Shown here in pieces: positions 6,259 through 64,000 of a stretch of 64,000 bases of DNA. The stretch lies in NCBI GenBank assembly GCA_907165135.1, contig OU015570.1, positions 1,240,001-1,304,000 on the forward strand, read 5' to 3'. The DNA comes from Oikopleura dioica. Its lineage: Eukaryota; Animalia; Chordata. Positions within the stretch are counted from its first letter, which is position 1; every line of letters begins with the position of its first letter. Position numbers and translations under genes: made by a program. The notes under the pieces were generated by a model, which had not been told where the DNA came from, ran no database searches, and saw only the letters and a program-made list of their open reading frames with translations.

Positions 6259-7344
6259 CAGAGCCCGCAATGATCACGAGACTTGTATTTTATTCATGAG
6301 ATTATTATTCTGGACCGTAATAACATAAAAAAATGAGTAAAAAAAAGTCTCATCGTCGGGAATCGAACACCTCAGATTGGACAGAGAAGCGATTTTGGAG
6401 AAAGAATTGGCTCTAGAATTTTTTGCACACGAGTGCACAATACGATTCACCTATCAGAAAATAGCATTTTTTCTGTAGATTACAATTCTTATGGTTTACA
6501 GTTGAAGTCTTTTGGAACATTTTTTAAAACGCAAAAAGTGCTAGCTCGAGCCAAAAATTGAATTTTAAGGGATGAAATAGGGATTTTCGGGGGTTGCCAT
6601 AATGAAAAAGAATTATCCTCATCATCTAAGGAACTCATTCCATCAATTGTTTTTCATGTTTTAGAAGGTTGAATTTCACGGAATTTTCCCACGGTGCCAC
6701 CGTGACGGTGGACCCCTAACTATACATGAATAACGTACCTAATAATAAATTATTATGGCGAAATAACATTAATAATTAACACTATAAGATGTTTTTCTTT
6801 ATCTAAAAAGTGAAAAATACCATTTTTTCACCAATAAATTTATTTTATCAGATGTTTATGGAAGAAACTTGCAAATTTTATAAAAAAGCGTTACTTTCTT
6901 TCTAAGAATCGTACGTAAAATTCGTGAAGAGGACCTTTTATAAATCTTGTCCAAGTAAAGCTTCTGTCCAAATGAAGCTCTGTCCAAGTGAAGCTCTTGT
7001 CCAAGTGAAGCCTACTCGGGGAAGTGTGGTAGGTGTTGTACGTTTCAGAATATACACGCCTCGCTGTTGTGGATATGCATTTGCTGCGATGCGAAAAGAT
7101 TGACTCTAGTTTTGCGAATTGTAAAAAATTAATATTAGCGACATTTAGTAGCAAGCGGTCTGGCAGAAAAGTGGCCGGGGCCAAGCGAAAGTTATTTTGG
7201 ACAGGTGCGGCGAATCTACTTTCCTTATTCGGAAATGAGCAAAGCGAATCCACAACATCGCGCTAAATCTCGATCTGATGGCCAAATAAAACAGCTAAAA
7301 ATATGGATAATATATATAATAATATAATAAAATATTTCCAAATC

Positions 7345-7445
7345 AATTTGAGGTGGGTGAGGTTGTGGACGTAACTGAGAATGATCAACTTAGATTTCCC
7401 AGCCCTTGTCAAGCCCCTTAAATTCAAAAATCAAGGGACGGTGCT
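7345..7445 (+). repeat. Short interspersed repeat family ending GTCAAGCCCCTTAAATT; other copies near 4610, 8740, 14905, 43636 (-) and 50395 (-)
   Basis: Shared GGTGGGATTGGGGAC..CTGAGAATGATCAACTCAG..TTTGTCAAGCCCC. The 8830-8900 copy includes the satellite hairpin. Confidence 0.8.
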
Positions 7446-48410: not shown

Positions 48411-50226
48411 GATAGTCCACGGGACTCAGTCAACCGACGTGTCAAGGGTGTTCTCTCTGGAGAAAACTCTGAGTACGTTGTTATTGAAAATATCAATTTA
48501 ACAGAAATCAGGAATTTTGCGGAAGAGGTAGCTGCTGCAGAAGCTGAAGCTGAGGAAGCATATGAAGCCTTTGATCCTAACGCTTCACAAGTCACTTTAG
48601 GTGAAATGGAAAACTATTGAACGAGACATCGCTTTAGATGATCTCAATGTTAGTCAAGAAAAAGTTGAGTCCATTCTTGATAAAACAATCCAGAATGAAA
48701 GTACAAAGCTTGAAACCACTTTGTCCGATGAAATAAAAGCGGAAGCCATTCCGGATGATGATGAAGAAATGGTTGAAATAACCCCATCAAAATCAAAAGG
48801 GAGTCTTCAGTTCCCGAATGAAACTCGAGACGACAATTCAGTCAAAAACTTTTCTCCGAAAACAACGAGAGTAACCTCGAGTTCACCAAGGACAATGAAT
48901 CAGACGATGATTCTGATATTGAGCTGCCGAGCATGGCTCAAGAGCCCCAAATTAAATTGAAACTAAATCAAATGAGCAACTCAACAAAAATTGCACTCCC
49001 TAATTTCAAGGAAATTGACAATATCAAAACTTGGATCAAGCAATGTGGATTCATTCTATACTATGGAGGCATTGATGACGAGGCAAAACAGGTCTCTCAC
49101 ATGTGTGGTCGACTTCCACAACCTCTACAAAAACCGTTATCCTCGAACTTTCAAAAGGCGATTATTAGGTCAAGACGAAAATGACAGTCAAACATTTTGA
49201 GCAGACACTCGAAAAATTTTGCAGAAAGGATAATTTCGAATATGAAAGTATGCTAAAGAAAATCAGATTCGATGAAAATAAGCATGAAAATTTAAGAAAC
49301 TTCTTTTATGCTATAGAAGAGCTCGTCAGAAACACTGTCACAGAAAGTGCTTCAGATGAGGTTCTTAAGGAACTCTCCTTCCAACATTTTCTCGACAAAC
49401 TTCCAAAGAAAATCCAAAATTCCGAAATGCTTCTTGAATACAGAAAGGACAAGAGTAAGTCAAAAGACGACTTAGTCGATAAATGTACAGAGCTTTATGC
49501 CAAATATAGATCTGGCGAGTTCACAGAGCTCAATAATTTGAACCGAGGTAAAAAACAATTTAATTCCTTCGGAAAGAACTCTTCTGGAAAATCTTTCTGG
49601 CAAGGAAACAAAAAAGAAGTCACTTGCTATTTTTGTGGCATTAAAGGACATAAGAAAAATGAATGCCGAAAACTTAAAGCAGTGGTAGCTCCAATAAGGA
49701 AAGGCAAAGATCGTTTGCTACAAATGTGGCCGACCAGGTCACAAAGCTCCAGACTGCAGGACAAAAAATGGCTCTCAGAATTTCCAAAATGGGAAGAGAG
49801 ACTTTAAGAAGCCTTTTGATGCGGCCAAAAAGGACAGCAACAAATTTGATAAAAAAAACCAGTTTGCTTTTACTGTAAAAAGCCTGGCCATATAGAGGCA
49901 AATTGCTTTAAAAAGAAAAATTCTTCCAGCCGTAGAAAGGGCTTTAACAACTACAAGAAATGATTCCAACAACTACAGTTATCTTAAAACAGTACCAAGA
50001 TAATGGTTCTGTCAAAAACCTAGAAATTCCGCAGGTCCTTATCGACACTGGGGCAAGTGAAACTTATATCAGTAAAAGTATTATTCCGGAATCAATGACT
50101 TTAGAAAAATTGGAAAATCAAGAGTCAATTTCTAATGCCTTTATGGAAGAATTAACCACAATAAGTGAGACTCTTGAAAAATCTTGCTATGAAAATGTGC
50201 CCTTTATAAACGATACGACCTCTTAG
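48410..50226 (+). pseudogene. Frameshifted gag-protease remnant with three CCHC knuckles
   Basis: CYFCGIKGHKKNEC, CYKCGRPGHKAPDC and CFYCKKPGHIEANC lie in different frames. LIDTGASETY protease; truncated before RT. Confidence 0.85.
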
Positions 50227-51224
50227 ATTTTAGTAACTCTATGTAAGCCTGAAAAACAAAACACAAAAATGGAATAAAATACAATTTCAAAACTATACTG
50301 TATAGTCTATACAGTGTGATCTACTCTTAATGGCACTATGAAGATTTAGAGAGATAGATCATTACACCACATTCCTTGATTTTTATATAGGGGCTTGAGT
50401 CAAGCCGCTTGACAAAGGCCTGGAACTCTGAGTTGATCAATCTCAGTTTTGTCCCCAACCCCACCTACACCCATTCTTTTTAAAATTCAAATTATTCTTG
50501 TTTTTATTTAACTTATGGTTTATAATTTAGATAATGAAAATCGTTTTTCTTTAAATTTTTAATTAATTTAATTCCTAGCTCGAAATAATCTTCCTTGAGC
50601 ATATCTGACGGTTCGTTTGGTACTCTTTGGCTAAGTTTTAAAAATTTGAAAAAATCTATTCTACCTTCCACCCTGGGTTTTGCGTGCTCACCCCGTATCA
50701 TGCGCTCCCCTGCGTGATCGCGCGCCGCGCGCTGCATTCAAAATATCGGCAAAATTTACAGTTTTTTGTAAATTTCGGACAGATGCATGCTCTGTTCAAA
50801 CTTTTTTAAAAAGGATTTGAAACAAGCTTGTCCCGCCGGTTATCCCAGTAACATCATTTTTTTTAACTCGGAATGCAACCTGGTGAACACAAAAATCACC
50901 ATTTTTGACCCTTTATATTTTCTCACCCCTTTTATTTTAGAGAAAGTCAGAAAAACAAAATACTAATTTTAGCTATCTTAAAAACATATTTGAAAATACA
51001 AAAGATTGGATTAGTATTTCGGGTACTTAATTTTTGTGTACGGACCCTATTGATAGTTTTTTGACAGAATTTCTCTTGAAAAATGATAGAACAACGATTG
51101 ATGTTCTTTCAAAACAGTTATTGTTTGTATCTAGATATCCACTTATTGCAACAAAGACGCGATCAAACTACAGCACAACGAATACCGAAGAAATCAACAA
51201 CGAGGCTCAGATACATGACTTATT

Positions 51225-51740
51225 ATCCTCAGGATTCATTTTTTGGGTATCCTGAGTATCATCCTCAAGATTCATAATTTGAAGGGTATCCTGAGTCCTA
51301 TCCTCAGGATTCAATTCTGACGGGTATCCTGAGTCCGATCCTCAGGATTCATTTCCAAGGGGTATGCTGAGGATGATCCTCAGGATTCATTTTTTGGGTA
51401 TCCTGAGTATCATCCTCAAGATTCATAATTTGAAGGGTATCCTGAGTCCTATCCTCAGGATTCAATTCTGACGGGTATCCTGAGTCCGATCCTCAGGATT
51501 CATTTCCAAGGGGTATGCTGAGGATGATCCTCAGGATAATTGTATACTTCCAAACCGTTATGCTCAGGCTAATTTTTTGGTACGAAAAGTAAGTCATAGA
51601 AACATCCTTAACCTAGCCCAGGGGCTACGCCCCGAAACCTCTCCTAAGGCCAAACCAAGGGGGCTTTGCCCCCGGGACCCTCATCAGAGAGCTTTTTGAC
51701 TAACCCTAACCCTAACACTAATCCTATACCTAACCAATCA
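51225..51740. repeat. Higher-order minisatellite (four ~38-bp variants repeated twice) followed by GC hairpins and a TAACCC-like tract
   Basis: Monomers GGGTATCCTGAG...ATCCTCAGGATTCA in the order ABCD-ABCD. GGGGCTACGCCCC, GGGGGCTTTGCCCCC and TAACCCTAACCCTAAC at 51620-51735. Confidence 0.85.
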
Positions 51741-52522
51741 TATTGAAACCTAAGGAATATCATAATTGCTTCATTAGGTTTCCATGAAAATTTGAATAAC
51801 TTTGTTTTGTGTGATTAACTGATCTGATTTTAGCTCAAAAGAAAAGTACCGCGACGAATTATTCGTTTTTTCAATGGATTATTCATTGCAACGAATTATT
51901 GGGCCGGGGTACCGTTTTTTTAATTTAAAGATTTTCTATTACTATTATTGGCAAATTATCATTATTTAGTTTATTCATTTTCATTAAAACAAAACAAAAG
52001 TGATAAGAATTAAAGAGAGAAAAAGTTTCTTCGGTCAATTATTGAGAGAGGTGAATTGTGAAAAATGCTTCTAGACGGGGGTTGTTGTAACAATGTTGTT
52101 GTTCTTCGCGGAGGACCCACTCCCAGAGAAGGGATTGAACAGGAGTTACGTACCGGACTGGCTAAAATGCGAGTTAGCCGGTATGTGAGAAAGACAGAAA
52201 GGTGCGAGTAAATCTAGAAAGAAATAATCGCGTATCTGGGGGATTTTGATCTATAGGCTCCAGATACGCGATTAAAAGTGCCTATAGATCAAATGAAACA
52301 GACTTCCTTGAAGTCACCTTGCTCGTTAATACTAGGTTTGAACAGTTTAATAAGGAAACTTTCGGTTAGCTTAAGGTTTGTGTAGTTAGAAAGGTTAGAT
52401 TGAATTATGGAAAATTTAGATTTGGCGAAATCGCCTTGAGAAATGTTGGTGGTAACTTCTGGAGAGTTAATATAATTGTCATAGTCAGTTTGGAAGGCGG
52501 GACAGTTGTTGGTGTGAATTTT

Positions 52523-53824
52523 GTTAAATTACCATGATGTTAGCCTGACGCAAATTTGCGAGCACTGTATGGATCCGTCTTTCCTTGAAATCACTGAAGG
52601 GAGCTTACTGACGTGTGTTCGTGAAATCGGCAACCACCTTTACTTCGAACCTGCAGTTCTCGATGATATTGAAGAAACTATCCGGTCCAATTGGCATTAC
52701 TACGATACCAACTTTAGTGGAGGCTTGTCGTGCGGAGAGTTTGAGGGTATATTGTATACAACTGCCGGTATGAAATTTCTCAAAAGTATATTTTTTAAAT
52801 TTAATTCTAGCGGCCTTCACACGGACCATTTACTCTGTGCTTCGAGCCGACCCTGAAAACGGAATGTCCTACTCAGATTTCAGTGCTTCCGTAAATCTGA
52901 TCGGAGACGAAATTGAAGAAGTAACTGGAGTTCTAATGAGCGGGCAAACACTCACGAAGATGCATTCGGTGTTTATCGATTCACAACTTTCGGATGGCTC
53001 CCAGACGACTCTCGCTGGTCCGGAATGCATCTGGGCTGTTGCTCGTTTTTGGTCGCTTCTCTTGGAGACATGATAGCCTTCTGACAGACTCGACCCTTCT
53101 GGCAGACACGACCCTATTTTCTTCTGTTGATTCGATAATAATTCTGATTCCACAATGCGCGTCAAGACACAAAATCTCAGAAAAATGAAATTCATTACTT
53201 TTTCTATTTTTTTCTCTGGCCTTGACGGAAGAAAATCTTGTCCCTTGACTATCAATGATGTTGAGAATTATCTCGTCGCGCAGGGGACAGTTTCGCGAGA
53301 GATCTGGTTAACAAAAAAAATTCCCGTGGCAAAGACGACTGGCGAAATTTTGTGAGGCCTAGGCGAACGGTATTTAGCGCGACATTTGACTCAATTAACA
53401 AAACAAAATCTTTTTGGAACTTACTTGATACTCAATATTTTCGAACGAAGGAAAGTAAATCAGAAAAAATGAAGAAAGTTTTTGCTCATCTGAAAAACCT
53501 CATTCGACCGAAGTTAACTTTTTCTGCTTCGAAGAAGAAAGCCGCCGTCGTTCACAACATAATAACCTTGAAGACGAGACTGAAGAAATTGATTCAAATA
53601 AAGAAAACCGAGCTTCTTGGATACTCTCATTGGAACTCCAGTTACTTCTTTAATTTCGTCCCCGATCAGATTTACGTAAGCACTGAAATCTGAGTAGGAC
53701 ATTCCGATTTCAGGGTCGGCTCGAAGCAAAGAGTAAATGGTTCGTGTGAAGGCCGCTAGAATTGAATTTAAAAAATAGACTTTTGAGAAATTTCATACCG
53801 GCAGTTGTATACAATATACCCTCT
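52523..53824 (+). other. 1.3-kb host-gene insert in PLE-3: EF-hand protein fragment, a second secreted-type ORF, and an inverted partial copy
   Basis: EF-hand loop DTNFSGGLSCGE, then a ~42-nt GT-AG intron and AAFTRTIYSVLRADPENGMSY... Bases 53625-53824 are inverted to ~52740-52940. Flanked by a 32-bp direct repeat of PLE sequence. Confidence 0.7.
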
Positions 53825-56199
53825 TGGAAGGCGGGACAGTTATTGGTGTGAATTTTAATTGCGGTTTTACTGGAGAGCGAGTATGATCAAGAGTGCGGAG
53901 ATGAAAGGTTCGGAGGGTTTCCCCTATATAAATTTCGGAACAGGAGCAGTTGAATCGGTAACAAATGCCTGATTTTTTAAGATGAATCAGGTTTCCGCCT
54001 AAGACGGGATTTAATAATTTGGCCTAAACGAAGGGTTTTAAAAGCGAGAATAACTTTGTACTGCGGTGTGATTTTACGGATGAGAGAGGAAATGGATTTG
54101 GCAATTTTGTTAACGCGTGGTGATGTTAATTCCAGACTCAAATGAAAACGATGAGTGATATTTGGGTCTTTTTCAGGGGGCACGAATTTGCGATCTTCGA
54201 TGGATCTAATTTTACATTTGATAATTTTAGCAGGGTAGTCGTTTTTAACAAATTTCTTAGTAAGAGAGGAAAGTGCACTGTCGAGATTTTGTGCAGTTGT
54301 AGTACAGCTGTTAGCGCGATAGATTTCGCCAGAGAGAAGTCCAAGTTTTTGAGAGAGGGGTGAAACTGATTTGGTGAAGTGTTGTTAAGTGTCGCCTTTG
54401 GAAGGCTTCTGATACTGTTTGAGCTCCAGTAATTTAGTGTTTGGATCCAGATAAATAGTCGTATCGAGGTAATTTAGAGAATGATAAGAGTCGAATTCAA
54501 TAGTGAAATTAACGTTCTTATCCCAGTTGTTAAGAGGGTGGTTAATACGCGGAAGTTCGGACTTTTTGATGATGCATTTTACATCATCGACGTATACTCC
54601 ATAAAATTTGATGTTGTTACAGGATTTTTCATGGTCGATAATATCGCTTTCTAAAAAATGCATCATGGTGTTGGCGATAATGCCGGAAATTTGCGATCCC
54701 ATTGCTACACCGCTGGACTGGCGATAGAAGCTGGTTTCTGTACAGAAGGCAGTATAGTAACAGAGCGTTTTAGTAATTACTTCTTCGAAAATGGGCCGAG
54801 GGATGATTTCGCATTCAATATCATCTCTTGACTCTTTTTCAAAGAATTTTGCACGGTTTGAGTAAATGAGATGGACAATTTTTAGGATGATGGGCTGTAT
54901 TTTATATCTGGTATAATTGTATTCAGAATTTTTGCAAAATAAGTTTCAATACCGGAAGTGAGTGAATTCTTGCTAGATACAATGGGGCGCAGTGAATGTC
55001 CTGGTTTGTGCCGTTTCAGGAGGCTATAAGCGGATTTAATGGCATAATTAGGGCGTATAAGATTGAAGGTGTTCTTACTGAGGTAAGGCTCAAGTTTACT
55101 TATAAGGGGGTAGAAAATTTTAAGATCAAGGTAGAGAGGATTACGGGCGAGTTTAATAAATTGAGAATTATTTAATTGTTTGTTAACTTTAGTATTGTAC
55201 TCGTCAGTGTGAATAAGTTGGATGTTTTTACTTTTATCAATTTTTATAAAACGGACAGAAGGGTTGTTATTTAGAAAGGAGGTAAGTTATTTTTGTTTGT
55301 TGCTTGGCATGTAGCACTTTCTTAACAAATGAAATTTGAGTTTTAAAATCGATTTAACTTCATCAATGGTAAGAGGGTCAATTTTAACAGATTCAGCGTA
55401 TTTAGTCCAGTTTTGTGTTAACTATTCGAGAGAAGTTAGAAGTTTGTTTGGGTTTGCGCTTCGATGCAAGGGGAGGTCAATGCCTAGTTTGAGCAATTCG
55501 GTGAGTTCGGAAGAAATAGGTTCGTTTTTAGTGTTAAAAATAGTAATGGGACAGTGGTGATGAGTGTTTGCAGATAAAAGAGATTGTATTTTAGAGTTAC
55601 GTTTTTTATCAAGGGGAAGTTGGTTGTTCGCAATGGTGGAAAAGATATGTTGTTTGGTGGTCGAAAAGTCGGAAGAGTTAAAATTTTGCTGCAGAGAAGA
55701 GACTTGGTTTTCGAATTTTGTTCGCAGGGTACAAATAGTGTGTACCGTACAAATGCGGGATTGTGTGGCTATTATGTCTTTATCAACAATTTTGAGCCGG
55801 TGAGAAAGTAGTTGATCGGGTGACCGATTAGTGTTGTAGTAGGGATTTAGGGAGATTAGTATAGTTTGGGGGTGTTTTGGCTTCGAAACATACGGTTAAG
55901 AAAGTAAGATGTTGTTTACTTCTATGAAGTTTCTCTCCAGGTTTGTTTAGTTTGGAGAAGTCGTCGATTATCCATGTGGTAATATCTTTGAAGTTGGCGT
56001 GTTGAATTTTATATTTTCATTTATTCGCAAGATCTTTCGAGTCAGATGGTATGAGCCTATAGATCAAAATTTCCCAGATACGCGATTATTTCTTTCTAGA
56101 TTTACTCGCACCTTTCCGTCTTTCTCACACACCGGCTCACTCGCATTTTTACCAGTCCGGTAAGTAACTCCTGTTCAATTCCTTCTCTAGTTTACCTTT

Positions 56200-56242
56200 T
56201 TCAGCCTGAAGAAGAGTCATCTGACTCGAAAGATCTTGCGAA
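56200..56242 (+). ncRNA. Minimal type I hammerhead (HHR-3) in the inverted pLTR
   Basis: CTGAAGA, stem II GAGTC-atct-GACTC, GAAA, palindrome AGATCT, stem I TTC(A)GC/GCGAA with a bulge, AATAAA. Confidence 0.75.
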
Positions 56243-56942
56243 TAAATGAAAATATAAAATTTAATACGTCAACTTCAAAGATAAAAATAAAGATATTCAC
56301 AGATAGATCCGGCGTTCTTTTTATAAGAGGAGAAGTGAGCTTCGACGAAGAGAAGTTTGGTACAAGAGCTTTTCAAGAGTGTCGCAAGAAAATCCGTTAA
56401 AATTGGATCAATGTCCAGAATTTTGGGAGCACGCTCACTTAAACTTTTCACTCACTTGGACTCGCGCTCGTTCTAACCCCCGCTCACTTGAACTCGTCGG
56501 TTCAAATGAGATTTTGGTTCAATCGAGCGGGAGTTCAAGTGAGCTTTCAAATTTGCGTGGGCGATAGCGCCGCGCGCCGAGTGGTCAGATTTAATGCAGC
56601 TCTTTTCGATTTTTCTTATTTTTTCACGATTTCTTAGTAAATTTTCAAGAGAAAATCTCATCTAGAGAAAAAAATCAAGGATTAAAAAGAGAAGTCCTGG
56701 CCTTGGCAACCTGTGAAAAAAACCTGAGTCAGGATTGAAAAATAATAAAGAAGCTGCTGAGCGGCTTTTAGAAAATGACTGTTTTGATAAAATTAATGAG
56801 GTTGCCCATTCTAGTTCTCTCTTCAATTAAGTCCTTCGTTTTCCCCTTTCTTATATTAACTTTCTTACTTTAAATCCCTTTTCTTATTTTCAAAGCCTAA
56901 AATTGTCAGGAAATAACCGTCTCTTCATAGAATGAAATAAAG

Positions 56943-57244
56943 GGGTGGCGGGCGCCCAGGTTCACAATCGGTTGGTTCACAATTTTGTGAACCCGGTTCA
57001 CAATTTTGTGAACCTGGTTCACAATTTCGGTCAAAAAAGTGACTCAAATCGACTGAAGGCGGGGTTGTAGAGAAAGTTTATAACGTCTAAAATGAGTTTC
57101 TCTATAAAATCAGGCGCGGAGCGCATAAAGTTCCCTGATTTCATCCTTTTAAAAATTTTGTGAACCGGGTTCACACAGATTGTGAACCGGGTTCACAAAA
57201 TTGTGAACCGGGTTCACAATTGTGAACCTGGGCGCCCTACACCC
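56943..57244. mobile_element. hAT-type MITE (302 bp) built of GGTTCACAAT/ATTGTGAACC palindromic repeats
   Basis: TIR GGGTG(GC/TA)GGGCGCCCAGGTTCACAAT; 8-bp TSD AAATAAAG. Confidence 0.8.
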
Positions 57245-57252
57245 AAATAAAG

Positions 57253-57321
57253 TTGCTTGCCAATGCTTGCGTCTTCGATCAGGCCAACTACGGCAAGGTC
57301 ATGAAGGAAGTTCCCAACTAC
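57253..57321 (+). pseudogene. RPS25: 40S ribosomal protein S25 fragment
   Basis: LLANACVFDQANYGKVMKEVPNY aligns by eye with the eS25 stretch [23 protein letters not shown]. Confidence 0.75.
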
Positions 57322-57488
57322 AATCCCCTTCATCATCATCAAAGGTAAGAATTTCCATAAATAATAAAGCAAAGCCTTGAAGGACTTAATTGTGAAATTA
57401 AATCAAACTTTTTTCTTTTAACGAGTTGATATTTATTCCTAGAAGATTCGCCGAAATCAGACATGAATGAAGAAATGAGCACAGAAAT

Positions 57489-59586
57489 TCAAGAACTCGT
57501 CGTCGGACTCAAATCCTGAGTGAGTCTACTTTGCATCTCGTCTTGCGTCTCCGAGTTGGTATGCAGATTTTCGTCAAGACTTTGCCTGGCTTCTGATAAA
57601 GGTAACTCATCGTCACTACTGTCTGGGCGAGGAGCAATAATTACTCTTTTTTTAAGTGGTGGTTGCACCTCGACTAAGTTAACTAATAGTTTTACATTTT
57701 TGTAATTGAGCTTACCTAAATTAATTAAATAATCGTCATCTTGCTGATTCTGAGGCATGTTCATCCCAATCGGCTGGCCGTAAACTTGCTCACCCGGTGG
57801 ATGCATCATGCCTGGATTCATCTGCATTTGGTTCGGCATCATGTTCATGTTGCCCATGTCCTCTACCGAATCCCAATTCGAGCAATCAAATGAATAATCA
57901 CTCGCACCCTTCGCACTGTTATCATTAGTTGCATACTAAAATATATTTTCAGACGGAGTGCCTAGAATCCGCTTGGGAAAAAGCGCCCTCTGCCGCGCGC
58001 TTTTCTGAAAAGAGGCCGAAAATAGGAGCGTGCAGCCACAAATTCGTGGATCATCAAAGGTAAATCTAACATTCCAAAAAGAATAAGGGGAATTTTCGGG
58101 GAGATCAGCCTTTCTTCGTAGAAATCTATCAATTTCAATTTTTGCAACAATAGCTTCATCATCGTCATCGTCTAAGTTATTTTCTCTCTCTTCAATAGGA
58201 TTCTTTCTAAGATAATCTTTGTATCTCCGAGCCTTTTCGTACATTTCTGCTCTTAGTTCTGAAGTTTTATCGTAAAATTTTTCTTCAGCCATTTTTTTAG
58301 CCTTTTCAACAGCATCTTCAAACGCAATATCATTCATCCTTTTTTTCAACTAGAATTAAATTAAAGAGTATTTAAATACTTCTGGTCTCCTCCAAAGATA
58401 CGATCTTTTTTTCTTATCATCATTTTTTGCTATCCTTTCTTGTCGTTCTCTATCTTTTACTTCCTTCTGACATGCAGCCAATTCGGCCTTATCTTTCGCG
58501 ATCTGTGCTCTTTTCTCCGCTGCTAACCTCTTTTTCTCAGCTTCTTGACGCTCCCTTTCCGCCTTTTTACGTGCCCTTTCATCAGCTTTTCTCTTCTTCT
58601 CTTCTGCTTCATTTTTTTCCCTCTCCGCCTTTTTTTGTGCCCTTTCTTCTGCTTTTTTCTTCTTTTAAGCTGCTTCTTTTTGCTCTCTTTCTGCCTTTTT
58701 TAGTGCCCTTTCATCCGCTTTTCTCTTCTTTTCAGCTTCTGCTTGTTTGGCCTTTTCCTCCGCTTGTTTCTTTTTTTCCGCTTCATTTCTTTCTTTTTCT
58801 TCGATTATTTTTCGTTGTTTTTCAATCAGATCACTACTACGAAGTGCTGTCTTAGCTCGCTCGATCTCCTCCTTATTCATTTTTCCAGGTTTCCGTGGCT
58901 GAATGTTAACATATCGTTTTAGCGGCACAAGATAGACGACTGGCCGCGGGGTCACAGTCGATGAACTAGTTGATGCCTCCTTCGACGACGGGAGCGACAC
59001 CAAGGAAGATTTGATCAAGTTCGTCGACATCGGCATTGACGACGATTCAGTCAACGTCGGATCAGGTAATTCAGAATCCTCAGATTCATACTCGTCAATG
59101 ATATCAAATTCTGAATCAACTTCAGGCTGATTGAAGATATTTTCGCGTTGAAATGATTGCTGGCAATGTAACCCTGTGGCTTCATGAACTGGCGCAAGAT
59201 CAGCTTCAGTAAGCTCTTGTGGCGGCTCTATTTCTCCTTCATCTTCGTTTCGGAGATTTTCCTCGGTAAGCTCAAAAATTTTAGTCTTTATTTACAAATT
59301 ATAAACTTACATCACTTCGTATTTCTTTGAGAGCTTTGTAAAAGTAAGGTGTTTTGTCAGTTTCTCGAATAAACTTCATGAAACTTGCGTTATCTGTGAG
59401 CATAGTTTCTGCTGCTGATGGAGCAAAGTAGATCTTCCGGAAGTACTTCAGCATAATTTTTTTTCTTTCAACGGAATCTTCCTCAAGAACGAATTCCTTG
59501 ATTAATTTATTTATGAACACATATCGCATCAGCATTGATAACTTTCTTGACCTTCGTTCAGCGCAAAAAATCGCGTCTTTTTCCAT
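57489..59586 (-). pseudogene. Low-complexity coding pieces downstream of the transposase (acidic, E/K/A coiled coil, Gln/Met/Pro-rich), with stops
   Basis: ORFs 59299-59586, 58665-59054 (continues past a TAA), 57936-58349 and 57489-57857. Could be the transposase C-terminus or cargo. Confidence 0.5.
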
Positions 59587-59719
59587 ATTACTATGCTCAG
59601 CCTTTCTTCTAGCTATCGTACAAGCTCTTACCAGCTCAGTAACCTTACTTATATGCGTGGCCTTCGTAACGCCGCATAATTCCAGTTTACCATGCTATGA
59701 TGATTATTTAACCATTTTT

Positions 59720-60825
59720 TTAGTCTTCCTTGATTTCACTTACGAACGATTCAACTCCATTATTGGTGTTATCTGTGCAACCTTCTTTGCTTCGTCTGGC
59801 TAGCTCAACACTCCAGGTACTCGACGGATATATAGAATCAGCTCGGATCCATGTAGCCCTCAGGTATCGTTCAAAATCACTCCATAAAGCGTCGGATAAT
59901 GGACATTTCAATCGAGAGATAATGTCGCCTAATAGTTCAGAATAGCAATCGTAAAAGTTTTTATTTGATAAGTCCACCCATGCCATTCCAGCCACAAGAC
60001 TTTGCAAGTCAGATGCTTTTTCATATCGGCTTTGGAGTCCTATATCCGCGGCATATCTCTGGCAAGCTTTTTGTTGCTGTATTCAAAATTATAAATCAAA
60101 TTATCTGATAGAAAATCTTTAGAAATCCCGTAACCGGCGCAGAAGGAATCGTCTCTGCTTCGTACGTCGAAGAAATTGCCGAAGAAAACTTCGACGATGT
60201 TCCAGACAACGATTCCTTCACTTCCAACTCGGGTAAGAACGATATTGATAATTTTAGCCCATAAGTGAAAATGACATCCTTCAAAATGAAGGTTCTGATC
60301 GTGGAAAACCGAATTGAATGCCAGCCTTTGTGCTGGCTCGAAGTCTGCCATAACGGTCGTCAATTGAGTTGTCCCTAATAGATTCTAATAGGAGCGGTTT
60401 TAATCGTAATTCTAGTAACATTCCGATCACTGGACGATGATTTTTGTAACAATAATGGAAAATGCTGTATGGATAACCTCTATCAAGTCGAAAAGTGCGA
60501 ATGTAACAATGGTAAGCCTAATTTTACGCCTTTCCTTCAGTGCATAAAGAACATTCACAAATGTCTCTGTTGTGCTATTCGGGATGAGACACGTAAATCG
60601 AGGATAACAATGTCCACTTGCATCTTTTGTTGACAATGTCCAGATCAGTTCAGCTGGCATATCAGGTTTTTTCTTAAGATGTTTTCCATCTGCTGTCCAG
60701 AGGGATTGAATTTTTAATTGATGAAGCGATGCATCAGTGGCGAAACACGGAAAATCATCGAAAACTTGACTCTGATCATGATCCTCGAGCTCGGAATTGT
60801 CTATTCGCCATCTGGTTCCTGTCAA
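59720..60825 (-). pseudogene. MULE DDE transposase core, broken
   Basis: WTADG (D1), MADFEPAQRLAFNSVF (D2), GCHFH, and TW..TDNTNNGVESF (E) across several frames. Confidence 0.85.
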
Positions 60826-60881
60826 TTGTTAATTGATATTTTTAGGAAGAGATTATGAGCGGAATATTCTGTAAAAAGCGA

Positions 60882-61590
60882 AGATGGAGACAACAAAGAG
60901 AACAAACATTCAGGATCATCTCAATCAAACTGCAGCTATTCAAAAGGCAACTGAAACGATTCCCGGTAAAGCATCAGGCTTCAAAGACATCCAAAGTACG
61001 CTCAAATTCAAAGAAAAGGAGCTGATGAACATTTAGGTCTGAGCGAGCGTGAGAAGCTCAGAAGCCAGCTTACCGATGAGATTTTGGAAATCAAGCAGGA
61101 CAATGAGCGCCTCTACGATGAGATCAAGTAATGTCACCGATTTCTTTCATCTCATAATTTATTTTTCAGATGCGCAGTTGAAGCAAAGGCTACCAAAAAA
61201 ACAAGAATCGGAATTGTCAGCTGCATTCTCAAGGGTGAGCTCACAGAAGCAATCACTCGCTTATCAGCCGACTTTGCCAATCTATTCGAGAGCATCCACG
61301 AACTTGTTTTCAACTGAAGTTCCAACAATTATCGGTGGTGAAGGTAATGTAGTTTTAAAGTAGGCCCAGTCCTGATTAACCCTTGATTTCAGAATCCGAG
61401 ATGAAGAACTACAAAGAAACGAAACATTCGTTTGGGATGTTGCCTGCAAGCGCGCTGCAAGACTTCATCGACAAGGGACGCCATTTAAGAGAGTTTGTTC
61501 TCGAGTCCAACAGCGACAACGAGTCTATGCTCAAGAAAATAAATCCAATAAAAGGTAGATCATTAGCAAATGCAGTATTTAACCGGTGAA
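60882..61590 (+). pseudogene. Captured multi-exon coiled-coil gene fragment
   Basis: METTKRTNIQ..., REKLRSQLTDEILEIKQDNERLYDEIK and further exons separated by short GT-AG introns; contains stops. Confidence 0.45.
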
Positions 61591-61619
61591 TTAGATTTCT
61601 ACGTTGCTGATAGACAATG

Positions 61620-62310
61620 ACCCAAGTAAGTAAAAGAACCAGAAAAAGTTAAAATCACGATGTGAAAAGATGGTTTTACTATCAATGATGAAGTAAGGAT
61701 TTTTCGTTTTTGATTGTTGAACTCATTGTTTGAATTATTAGGACATCCGACTTTACAGTGGGCCCAGAAATCAGCAATTCTTGGATCAAGTCACTAGCGG
61801 AAGACTGAAATACGGAACAGAAGTGGCTCTGGAAATGGAGAAGGCGACAAGATGATTACGAAGCAACAAGGTAACATGTTACCCAGAGAAAGGTCTTAAA
61901 ACAGCTATTCTAGCCAAAGCCACAGTTCAAAGCCTTCACTGGAAGTGGCAACAGACTTGGCGCAAGTGACGCTGGCCCCTCAATTCCACCATCAAAGGCG
62001 CCGGCGACGGAATCGCTGGTCAACATTGACGAGTCAAAATCAAAAACAAAGTTGCGATTCCGTCTATCTTCTGGAAAATAGCTAGTTCAAGGTAAATCAG
62101 AAAATAACGCCAATTCTACTAATAAACTCGCAGAATTCAACCAAGACCACACTATCAGCGACATCAAAAAGTTCTGCGACCCTCACACCGGCGGACGCTC
62201 TTACGAGCTGCGCTCTGGCTTCCCGCCGAAGCCCCTCGATCTCAATTCCACTTCTTCACTCGTCGAGGCGAAACTGCTCAATGAAACCCTTTTTCAAAGA
62301 CTGCTCTAAC
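61620..62310 (+). pseudogene. SEP + SHP + UBX p97 cofactor (NSFL1C/p47/UBXN2 family) pseudogene
   Basis: KVKITM*KDGFTIND (SEP), FKAFTGSGNRLG (SHP box), EFNQDHTISDI...SGFPPKPL (UBX). Three introns retained; three premature stops. Confidence 0.85.
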
Positions 62311-62379
62311 AATCTAACAAGTATCACTCACTTCATATTTCTATTCTCACATGTACTGCGTATTTAGTCAATTCTTGCG

Positions 62380-63298
62380 TTAAAAGTTCAATTCAGCGAT
62401 TACAATACAATTAACATGAAATTTTCTGAAATAAAAAGACCTTCAAGTTCAACCGCTATTAATATAAGATTGGAATCAATTAACAATTCTTGTATACAAT
62501 TTAAGTGTTCTTCAATTTGAGCAGTCCTATCCACTACTATTCTCTCAGCACGTATGCCTGATGATTTTTCAAAACGCCAGGAGGATTGCTGCTGATTTCG
62601 ACTTTTTTTCTTGTCAAAAAAATATTTTGAATCTTGCTCGGTTAAACCGATAGCCTCTTCAATTTCTCTAAAATATGTTTTCTCATCTTAAGTTGAAAAA
62701 CAATCAGACTTCGGAGTTCTTCGAAGAGAACATACCTCTGTTATAAAAGCTCGGAAGACTTGATAGTCTTTGTTCGATTTATGAATCCAATCTGTTTGAT
62801 GTAGTTAGAGACAAGAGCCCTCCATCCATCGCTTGCAATACAAGCCGAGTCAGATAAATGTTTGAACCAATCCTCCAACGGTCCAAGTTTCATATTTTCG
62901 ACGTCGAAGTAATTTTCCTCTTCTAACCTTTCTTTCGCCTTTTTTAAATATAAATATGTCTTGCATGTGCATCCTTTTGATTTTCGTAAGCAAAGAAGTC
63001 GTACTCGCCACGGATACTCTGAAGCCATATTTTAGCGCCTTACCCAGAAATAGGTCGATATGCGTTCAGGCGTTAACTCCAAATGCAACTATTTTTTACC
63101 ATTAGAATCACTCTCCGTAAACGTAAGAGGCCAACGAGGAGAAAACCATGCAACATCACTGCCAACTCTAACCGCTATCCTCCAATTAGTCTTCAAGGGA
63201 AAGCAACCTAAGGCTTGAGGCTCGTCCAATGTTCCGGACAATGGAAGTTTATTGAAGTTCTGAAGACTAGGAGGCTTTGTCGGCCATAACAGCTTCAT
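62380..63298 (-). pseudogene. Probable MULE N-terminal exon(s) with a WRKY/FLYWCH-like zinc-finger remnant
   Basis: PWRVRLLCLRKSKGCTCK, on the same strand as the DDE core and just inside the right TIR. Confidence 0.45.
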
Positions 63299-64000
63299 TT
63301 TATCTATTAAAAAAATTTAGCCAGAAAATACAGTACGAAATGGCTTTGAATTACAGATTTATCTACAGTTATTCTTCCTCAATCTTCTCTCACTCAATTA
63401 ATAATGCAGTATTGTGTAACCTTCAAGTACTTCTTAAAACCGGCAACCTCAATTCCTCCGTCTCACAGACACAAAGTCTCGTAGACAACAGACACCTGCA
63501 AGAACTCATCAACCTCCGAACTTCAACCTTTTAAATTTTTAAAAGAGTGTTTCAAACAACTTTCAAGGAGATGTTTAAATATCTTCTTGATTCTGTCATG
63601 TGATTGATATTTTTTCGAATTTATTTGAATTTTTCTTTCTTTTTTTTTCAGGAAAAAATTTTGCAGAAAAGAAATTTTTGGCACTCATTCTAACTCCTCG
63701 CTCAATTGAACCGGCGCTCTAATTGGCCGGCGAGTTCAAACGAGCGAAGAGTCAGAATGAGCGCGAGTCCAAGTGAGAGAAAAGTCCAAGTGAGTGTGCT
63801 CCAGAATTTTGATGTCCAGAAGTTTCATTAAAAACTGTATAGGTTCAAGAAATTTTTTTTTAAAGAAATTATTTGATTTTCCAAGAAAATAAAAATCTAA
63901 CAAAGGATACTGCTGTAAGAATTCCGATCTGTAACATTTGATTTTAATGATCCCCGCAGATGGAAAATTAACTGAAGAAAAACTATTTCGTCAAAGATCT

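Follow-up and report, generated by a model that had tools for sequence, protein, structure and literature searches.

The window analysed here is a stretch of 64,000 nucleotides of the tunicate Oikopleura dioica (YSR:1,240,001-1,304,000 of assembly OKI2018_I69), and YSR is the male-specific (Y-specific) scaffold of this assembly. At window positions 56426-63802 lies a 7.4-kb transposon of the Mutator superfamily, which was inserted as a unit and is bounded by terminal inverted repeats (TIRs) and an exact 9-bp target-site duplication (TSD). Its interior is a patchwork that contains an interrupted transposase gene of the Mutator-like element (MULE) type and at least seven fragments of host genes copied from other chromosomes. 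The genome-wide DNA searches on which this description is based covered the assembly of 64,281,565 bp in 19 contigs, whose scaffolds are published as PAR (17.0925 Mb), XSR (12.9591 Mb), YSR (2.91637 Mb), chr1 (14.533 Mb) and chr2 (16.1588 Mb); the assembly is long-read and Nanopore-based, and YSR was reported to hold 54.9% repeats and 170 genes (PMC8008620). Protein searches were run exon by exon, and the statements on reading frames are arithmetic on coordinates, with no spliced, joined model behind them.

Ends, target-site duplication and family of the element

The element starts with GGAGCACGCTCAC at position 56426 and ends with GTGAGTGTGCTCC at position 63802, and the 9-bp sequence AGAATTTTG is present in exact duplicate immediately outside both ends (56417-56425 and 63803-63811), a match that would arise by coincidence with a probability of about 4^-9. 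With the left 135 bp as the query in a genome search, the two TIRs (56426-56543 and 63684-63802) were found to be 79% identical over 118 bp; a repeat search within the window returned a TIR core of 59 nt at 85%, and the length of the TIRs is 118-139 bp. The claim of an earlier note on this DNA, that paired TIRs and an exact 9-bp TSD define one element, was therefore borne out. A short direct repeat, ATGTCCAGAA, is also seen at the target site, once upstream of the left duplication, with which it overlaps, and once directly behind the right duplication (56410-56425 and 63803-63820).

A genome-wide search with the TIRs, which the earlier note had proposed, revealed four other two-ended copies of 0.9-5.2 kb. 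In all of them a left-type end pairs with a right-type end as in the window element, and each has its own perfect duplication; the left and right TIRs are long and keep their separate types throughout the family. The TSD is exactly 9 bp in the window element and in three of the other copies, and 9 or 10 bp in the fifth. The left terminal region with its TIR (56426-56564, plus strand) is 92-93% identical to the four other copies and is the sole left-side sequence that the window element has in common with them, and the right subterminal region with the right TIR (63442-63802, plus strand) is 73-92% identical to their right ends. Three copies are short (860-902 bp; chr1:14336114-14337015, PAR:10891965-10892843 and chr2:4340232-4341091), have 9-bp TSDs of their own and are homologous to one another from end to end, and they share with the window element just the element positions 1-139 and about 7017-7377. 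The remaining copy, of 5.2 kb (YSR:1355449-1360608), was considered as a second cargo carrier and rejected, because it is a short copy stuffed with high-copy repeats and has neither transposase nor host cargo. The duplication that flanks it, GGAGCACACT, resembles the family's own TIR terminus, which suggests that this copy was inserted into the end of another copy, or that its boundary is ambiguous. The family is therefore real, and the window element, one transposon within it, is the sole member with a long unique interior; no cargo-free version of this element exists.

The arrangement of the ends also bears on the alternative that two independent short members of the family flank a Y-linked junkyard of gene fragments, and that no single element exists here. 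In favour of such an origin, short copies of 0.9 kb do occur, and repeats gather on the Y scaffold as in a sink. However, the same 9-bp duplication stands at the outermost flanks, the left-type end and the right-type end point towards each other without partner ends in between, the N-terminal exon of the transposase gene adjoins the right subterminal region, and the flanks beyond the ends are without host-exon mosaics, all of which makes two insertions highly unlikely; independent insertion of the two TIRs was one of the outcomes that the earlier note had said would overturn its reading. As a control, the 7.4 kb on either side (49040-56416 and YSR:1303812-1311188) were searched in the same way, and almost all of their sequence proved to be multi-copy repeats, of which many occur on YSR only, with no single-locus host-gene match in either flank, in keeping with the published repeat content of YSR. 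The immediate flanks of the element had no other copy in this assembly, so that no paralogous empty site was found there.

The interrupted transposase gene

About 2.1 kb of a transposase gene is present in the element, in interrupted form and on the minus strand. The catalytic core and the C-terminal part lie at 59299-60828 (pieces 60828-60430, 60384-60243, 60082-59723 and 59694-59302) and the N-terminal exon or exons at 62744-63316 (pieces 63316-63092 and 63031-62744). The core pieces bear motifs typical of MULE transposases, and the core is colinear with two relatives in the genome, one with 37-57% identity at YSR:920.8-923.6 kb and the other, with about 32% identity, in a 7.1-kb family of five copies. 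As for the N-terminal part, piece 63316-63092 is 42% identical to a piece upstream of the YSR relative (YSR:923.4-923.6 kb), and piece 63031-62744 gave a weak match to the N-terminal open reading frame (ORF) of the 7.1-kb family. A dispersed repeat of about 60 bp (63018-63084; 13 or more loci, 86-95%), which is of intron-like size and gave no match in the Rfam and tRNA searches, lies exactly between the two N-terminal ORF pieces.

In order to assign the gene to a superfamily, the 185-aa ORF of the five-copy family was aligned with the window pieces, and the resulting profile was searched against 1.84 billion representative proteins. This search returned 845 proteins at E <= 0.001. PF10551 was above its cut-off in nine of the ten long hits, with the profile match overlapping the PF10551 region, and five of these proteins also had an N-terminal FLYWCH finger; the window pieces match these PF10551 proteins directly too. 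The pieces are of MULE ancestry, as the earlier note had proposed, and judging from its sequence the gene is that of a DDE transposase of the Mutator superfamily. A word-based protein search with the sister ORF was discarded, because it gave a single uninformative hit.

Just past the GCHFH motif, before the following conserved stretch, the catalytic coding sequence is broken by a 150-bp fragment of an SH3-domain gene, at which the frame shifts, whereas the sister ORF is continuous at this point. With a foreign fragment inside its catalytic core, the window copy is probably no longer autonomous. Hence, the description of the element as a transposase-bearing animal equivalent of the plant elements holds insofar as it is an animal MULE with host pieces, but the transposase that it bears is an interrupted one. 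No close copy of this transposase was detected elsewhere in the genome, and it is the only one found between ends of this TIR family.

Host-gene fragments in the interior

When the element was used as the query in the genome-wide DNA search, seven interior fragments were found to have exactly one further locus each, on chr1, chr2, PAR or XSR, with 92-98% identity. These fragments represent at least seven host genes, where three host pieces had been counted before, and together they amount to about 1.9 kb, or 26% of the element. Their edges are sharp, i.e., identity falls to random at both breakpoints of each match.

Three plus-strand fragments make up the largest block of cargo, which separates the N-terminal exon from the catalytic core. 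The first (60895-61169) contains exon parts and a complete 42-nt intron of an IFT74 gene and is 94-98% identical to PAR:10886041-10886541, apart from internal deletions of about 202 and 24 bp; the parent matches IFT74 in the PDB (E 1.5e-9). The second (61170-61630) corresponds to the CTLH region of a RanBP9/10 (RanBPM) gene, with 93% identity (95% without gaps) to XSR:7093766-7094239 on its minus strand, and its parent has CTLH according to Pfam and matches RanBP9 (7nsc_A, E 3e-21). The third (61633-62404) is the 3' part of a p47/NSFL1C-type gene, from the middle of SEP through the linker and UBX to about 100 bp of the 3' untranslated region (UTR), with 92% identity (95% without gaps) to chr2:15273674-15274466. 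The p47 alignment is unbroken over 772/793 bp, and in the chr2 gene it spans three or more introns as well as the 3' UTR. The junction between the IFT74 and RanBP9/10 fragments is blunt and that between the RanBP9/10 and p47 fragments has two added bases, both parents being known at these two junctions. On PAR, just 5.4 kb separate the parental IFT74 segment from the short copy with TIRs of this family. Roughly estimated, the two would lie so close by chance with a probability of about 0.01, and the IFT74 fragment may have been picked up there.

The other four fragments are shorter. That inside the catalytic core (60093-60242, plus strand, 150 bp) comprises an intron end and an exon and is 93% identical to chr2:1460905-1461054, in whose gene an SH3 domain was found. 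An 86-bp cysteine-rich, EGF-like exon fragment (60435-60520, plus strand) is 93-94% identical to XSR:9207226-312 (minus strand), and its name reflects a cysteine pattern recognized by eye, Pfam having given no hit. The RPS25 exon fragment that the earlier note had recognized was confirmed as 69 bp (57255-57323, plus strand) with 93% identity to chr1:3586999-3587067 (minus strand), where the parent ORF scored 86.7 bits against Ribosomal_S25. Finally, a 113-bp exon fragment of a CBP/p300 gene (57747-57859, minus strand) is 98% identical to chr2:12951363-475, whose ORF has KIX, TAZ and bromodomain. When the ORFs of the window were compared directly with Pfam, both as ATG-started and as stop-to-stop frames, UBX alone passed (27.5 bits), and RPS25 remained below the threshold (E 5e-4).

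In the p47, RanBP9/10, IFT74 and SH3 fragments, the alignment runs on through introns of the parent or takes in the end of one, which points to capture at the DNA level and not by retroposition, and unlinked gene pieces have been fused side by side in this way. The parents are complete and open, and the copies are truncated and carry stops and indels, so that copying ran from gene to element. In the p47 copy, for example, TGG has become TGA, CAG has become TAG and six deletions are present, and by Pfam the SEP and UBX exons of the chr2 parent are intact. The introns and UTR kept in the copies, and the location of the parents on other chromosomes, agree with the proposal of the earlier note that unrelated host pieces were captured as DNA. 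By contrast, its near-complete SEP-UBX gene proved to be three pieces from three chromosomes, those of IFT74, RanBP9/10 and p47: a UBX piece with its introns is indeed present, but it is a 3' part of p47 only, and most of what had been read as SEP belongs to the CTLH region of RanBP9/10. An intact parent, sought for both p47 (SEP and UBX by Pfam) and RPS25, was found on chr2 and chr1, respectively, and the possibility that the UBX gene is single-copy at this locus was thereby eliminated. The coiled-coil fragment with an intron that had also been reported is correct if the IFT74 piece with its 42-nt intron was meant, but not if the lysine/glutamate (K/E)-rich frame at 57492-59291 was meant, which has no parent.

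Since the IFT74, RanBP9/10 and p47 fragments abut in the same sense, and removal of the 42-nt IFT74 intron would let the reading frame of the IFT74 exon run on into that of CTLH, the block might be regarded as a functional new chimeric gene made by the transposon. However, a stop lies 50 codons past the sole ATG (60884-61036), the frame through CTLH is cut short, two nonsense changes and several deletions that shift the frame are present in the p47 part, and exons and introns are similarly diverged, as judged by eye from the alignment; a functional gene is therefore very unlikely. It might also be argued that the whole mosaic is an artefact, given that the assembly is derived from long Nanopore reads and that 55% of YSR is repeats. 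Chimeric joining of reads would not produce the 2-7% substitutions and specific indels that separate the fragments from their parents, and the same architecture recurs in the five independently placed copies of the 7.1-kb sister family, so that an artefact is extremely unlikely.

Apart from host-gene fragments, the interior holds sequences of other kinds. A MITE (miniature inverted-repeat transposable element) of about 300 bp (302 bp, 56943-57244), 99% identical to chr1:7982730-7983030, belongs to a high-copy family and is a later nested insertion: it has its own 8-bp duplication, AAATAAAG (56935-56942 and 57245-57252), and that of the chr1 copy differs. A 71-bp piece (57972-58042) of the terminal repeat of another multi-copy transposon matches about 45 loci at 90-97%, which often form inverted pairs 0.7-3 kb apart, and the window element has just this fragment of that transposon. 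Two short, unique-looking pieces were 98% identical to XSR:4700784-838 (57455-57509) and 90% identical to PAR:13467711-800 (57503-57590). Downstream of the transposase stop codon, a K/E-rich frame extends for 1.8 kb on the minus strand (57492-59291) with four in-frame stops and no frameshift. This frame may be the element's own tail, because the sister gene model has an acidic and then a K-rich tail, the likeness between the two being compositional only, and the genome search detected neither a host parent nor a homologue for it. It also stays in one frame across the CBP fragment, in the true CBP frame, and across the foreign TIR piece. The same search detected no host parent for an ORF at 62403-62687, and tRNA and Rfam searches across the element gave no match. 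No Ulp1/SUMO-protease domain was found by piecewise Pfam searches in the window element and in the scanned ORF pieces of a PAR copy of the 7.1-kb family, which is a weak negative.

Sister elements, loading of the cargo and known systems

Two sister lineages of MULEs in the same genome carry other host fragments, and they do so at the same internal position as the largest block of the window element. The 7.1-kb family consists of five copies that are 99.9% identical and lie on three chromosomes (PAR:2370424-2377539, PAR:6465k, PAR:12448k and others). Its TIRs are about 116 bp long and start with GAGRGAGGCGATTTTCTGGC, its transposase is probably intact, and the three copies that were inspected for a TSD had 9-bp duplications (GATAGATAG, CAAGTTCTT and TGGAAATCG). 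Between the N-terminal ORF and the core, five of five copies hold an EB1-ACSL-ACSL-EB1 mosaic together with a 127-bp XSR piece, and this cargo is 93-97% identical to the intact EB1 and ACSL genes of chr2. The presence of the mosaic in five nearly identical copies indicates that in this clade the cargo moved with the element, and a return to the EB1 template after ACSL is predicted by template switching during repair synthesis. The second lineage is represented by a diverged MULE at YSR:920783-923596, the relative whose transposase is 37-57% identical to that of the window element. This element has a 562-bp fragment of an SR/RRM gene (92% to PAR) between its N-terminal piece and its core, as well as fragments of a GCP gene (93% to chr1) and of a DnaJ gene (90% to chr1). 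A 194-bp inverted pair of 99.5% identity (YSR 915682/924170) was tried as its TIRs and rejected, as no target-site duplication was found. The 7.1-kb family and the window element have in common a colinear transposase (32%), 9-bp TSDs and antisense host fragments between the N-terminal ORF and the core; they differ in that the family is multi-copy and the window element single-copy, in their TIRs and cargo, and in the fragment that lies inside the core of the window element alone. About seven of eight independent fragment blocks are antisense to the transposase, which is a trend only (p ~0.07).

We consider, with a probability of about 0.85, that the window holds one cut-and-paste element of the Mutator superfamily that entered YSR as a unit, with a 9-bp TSD and a patchwork interior, that it is the sole transposase-bearing member of a small family whose 0.9-kb copies are internally deleted derivatives, and that its cargo is decaying neutrally. 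According to this model, insertion into YSR would have generated the 9-bp duplication, and the interior would consist of the minus-strand transposase gene, at least seven host fragments from four other chromosomes, pieces of other transposons and the later MITE. The fragments would most likely have been captured when double-strand breaks inside the element were repaired by synthesis that switched templates, the same gap-filling or fork-stalling model that has been proposed for Pack-MULEs and for animal Pack-TIRs, and the lack of a homologue of YSR possibly favours more filling-in. Once an extra fragment had landed in the catalytic coding sequence, autonomy would have been lost, and the copy, probably dead, would have been left with cargo that decays neutrally.

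Several findings count against this reconstruction. The window pieces alone scored 13.2 bits against Pfam MULE (E 0.12, cut-off 27.6), with the match at the end of the profile, so that the MULE assignment depends on the profile search and on transitive homology, and Pfam gave no hit for FLYWCH or any other DNA-binding domain in the N-terminal pieces. That this transposase belongs with these TIRs would follow from its position alone, the short copies sharing just the ends. For about 2.5 kb of the interior (56565-56942, the K/E-rich frame and 62405-62743) no origin was identified. Finally, the cargo-bearing element is single-copy, and its fragments may have been acquired on the spot, once it had been inserted.

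This last point corresponds to a distinct proposal for the same element, namely that transposase-independent break repair on the hemizygous, non-recombining Y region added the cargo after insertion, in which case the cargo of the window element would never have been mobile, i.e., it would be a Pack-TIR formed in place sensu Tan et al. 2021. The single-copy state of the cargo agrees with this, and most single-copy animal Pack-TIRs arise in this manner (PMC8277862). YSR, with 55% repeats, has no homologue as a repair template, one fragment breaks the transposase, and the range of divergence between fragments and parents, 1.8 to 7.3%, leaves room for several events over time. On the other side, a Poisson estimate indicates that fragments of these lengths are too short for their divergences to be told apart statistically. 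The sister elements have cargo at the same internal position, and one of them clearly transposed with it, so that loading before movement does occur in this clade. Taking both sides together, we give loading in place slightly less than an even chance. In either case the cargo of the window element is decayed and single-copy, and there is no evidence of its having moved or of its being expressed; the earlier suggestion that the element shuffles host exons is thus sustained by the physical juxtaposition of the exons, but not by any spread of the cargo.

In comparison with the Pack-MULEs of rice, maize and Arabidopsis (Jiang et al. 2004, cited in PMC6446971 and PMC8277862), the window element has the same Mutator-type TIRs and 9-bp TSD, and likewise encloses fragments of several unrelated host genes that were captured as DNA with their introns, were fused side by side and are mostly decayed. 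Its TIRs and TSD enclose seven fragments, each with a single parent elsewhere. Unlike Pack-MULEs, which by that account are non-autonomous and by definition without transposase sequence, it retains a broken transposase gene; in addition, its host is an animal, and it is single-copy and lies on a Y-specific region. Because transposase sequence is retained, the strict definition of a Pack-MULE does not apply and the term Pack-MULE-like is appropriate: the window element is a decayed, single-copy animal counterpart of a Pack-MULE.

Capture by DNA transposons is already known in animals in the form of Pack-TIRs, and a Mutator case is absent from the survey of 100 reference genomes that described them (Tan et al. 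2021, PMC8277862). This survey, the one systematic search of its kind in animals, found 370 animal Pack-TIRs, mostly hAT or Tc/Mariner, identified no Pack-MULE, had just four multi-copy cases for any TIR transposon, and does not mention tunicates in its main text. Its pipeline sought one insert of 100-5000 bp between short transposable element (TE) remnants, and the insert had to be non-TE and at least 90% identical to a unique parent, with no TE within 100 bp of the parent. Five of the fragments described here are at least 100 bp long and have the identity and uniqueness specified there, the comparison being confined to these two rules and the IFT74 parent lying 5.4 kb from a family copy. Like the animal Pack-TIRs, the window element is a TIR transposon that holds young, DNA-level copies of unique host sequence, and its single-copy state fits the gap-filling model; unlike them, it has at least seven inserts and a transposase gene (PMC8277862). 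Turmoil-1 of Caenorhabditis elegans is likewise an animal DNA transposon with incorporated protein-coding host sequence (transduplication), but as described in PMC2572040 it comprises two sequences inside the terminal repeats of another kind of element, and is neither a MULE nor a mosaic of many fragments. The closest database relatives of the window transposase carry MULE and FLYWCH, as do the Phantom/FLYWCH-type MULEs (group 20), which also have long TIRs and 8-10-bp duplications and for which tunicates are listed as hosts (PMC6446971). The N-terminal pieces of the window element differ from them in having no Pfam FLYWCH hit. Gene capture is not described for group 20 in that MULE survey, which found little evidence of MULEs in chordates beyond one Ciona sequence (PMC6446971), and no later animal case was found in the literature searched.

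The recurrence of cargo at one internal position raises the possibility, to which we assign even odds, that in MULEs of Oikopleura the stretch from the N-terminal exon to the core, probably an intron, serves as a tolerated cargo bay, in which host pieces build up antisense to the transposase without disabling the element. If so, autonomous animal Mutator elements would repeatedly take up and recombine host exons and, in the case of the 7.1-kb family, spread them, and the window element would be a Y-linked, over-loaded and finally broken end state of this process. In plants, Mutator elements that capture gene fragments are a textbook route to exon shuffling, and MULEs are regarded as rare in chordates. 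O. dioica, a chordate whose genome is among the smallest in animals, has several MULE lineages that each bear host-exon mosaics, and one of these lineages is still spreading. The window element itself is a decayed single copy, and the interest lies in the pattern that recurs over the MULE lineages of Oikopleura. They offer a compact, culturable animal system for the mechanism of capture, in which one could study how templates are switched when breaks are repaired, what influence a hemizygous Y region has and how cargo is tolerated inside a transposase gene.

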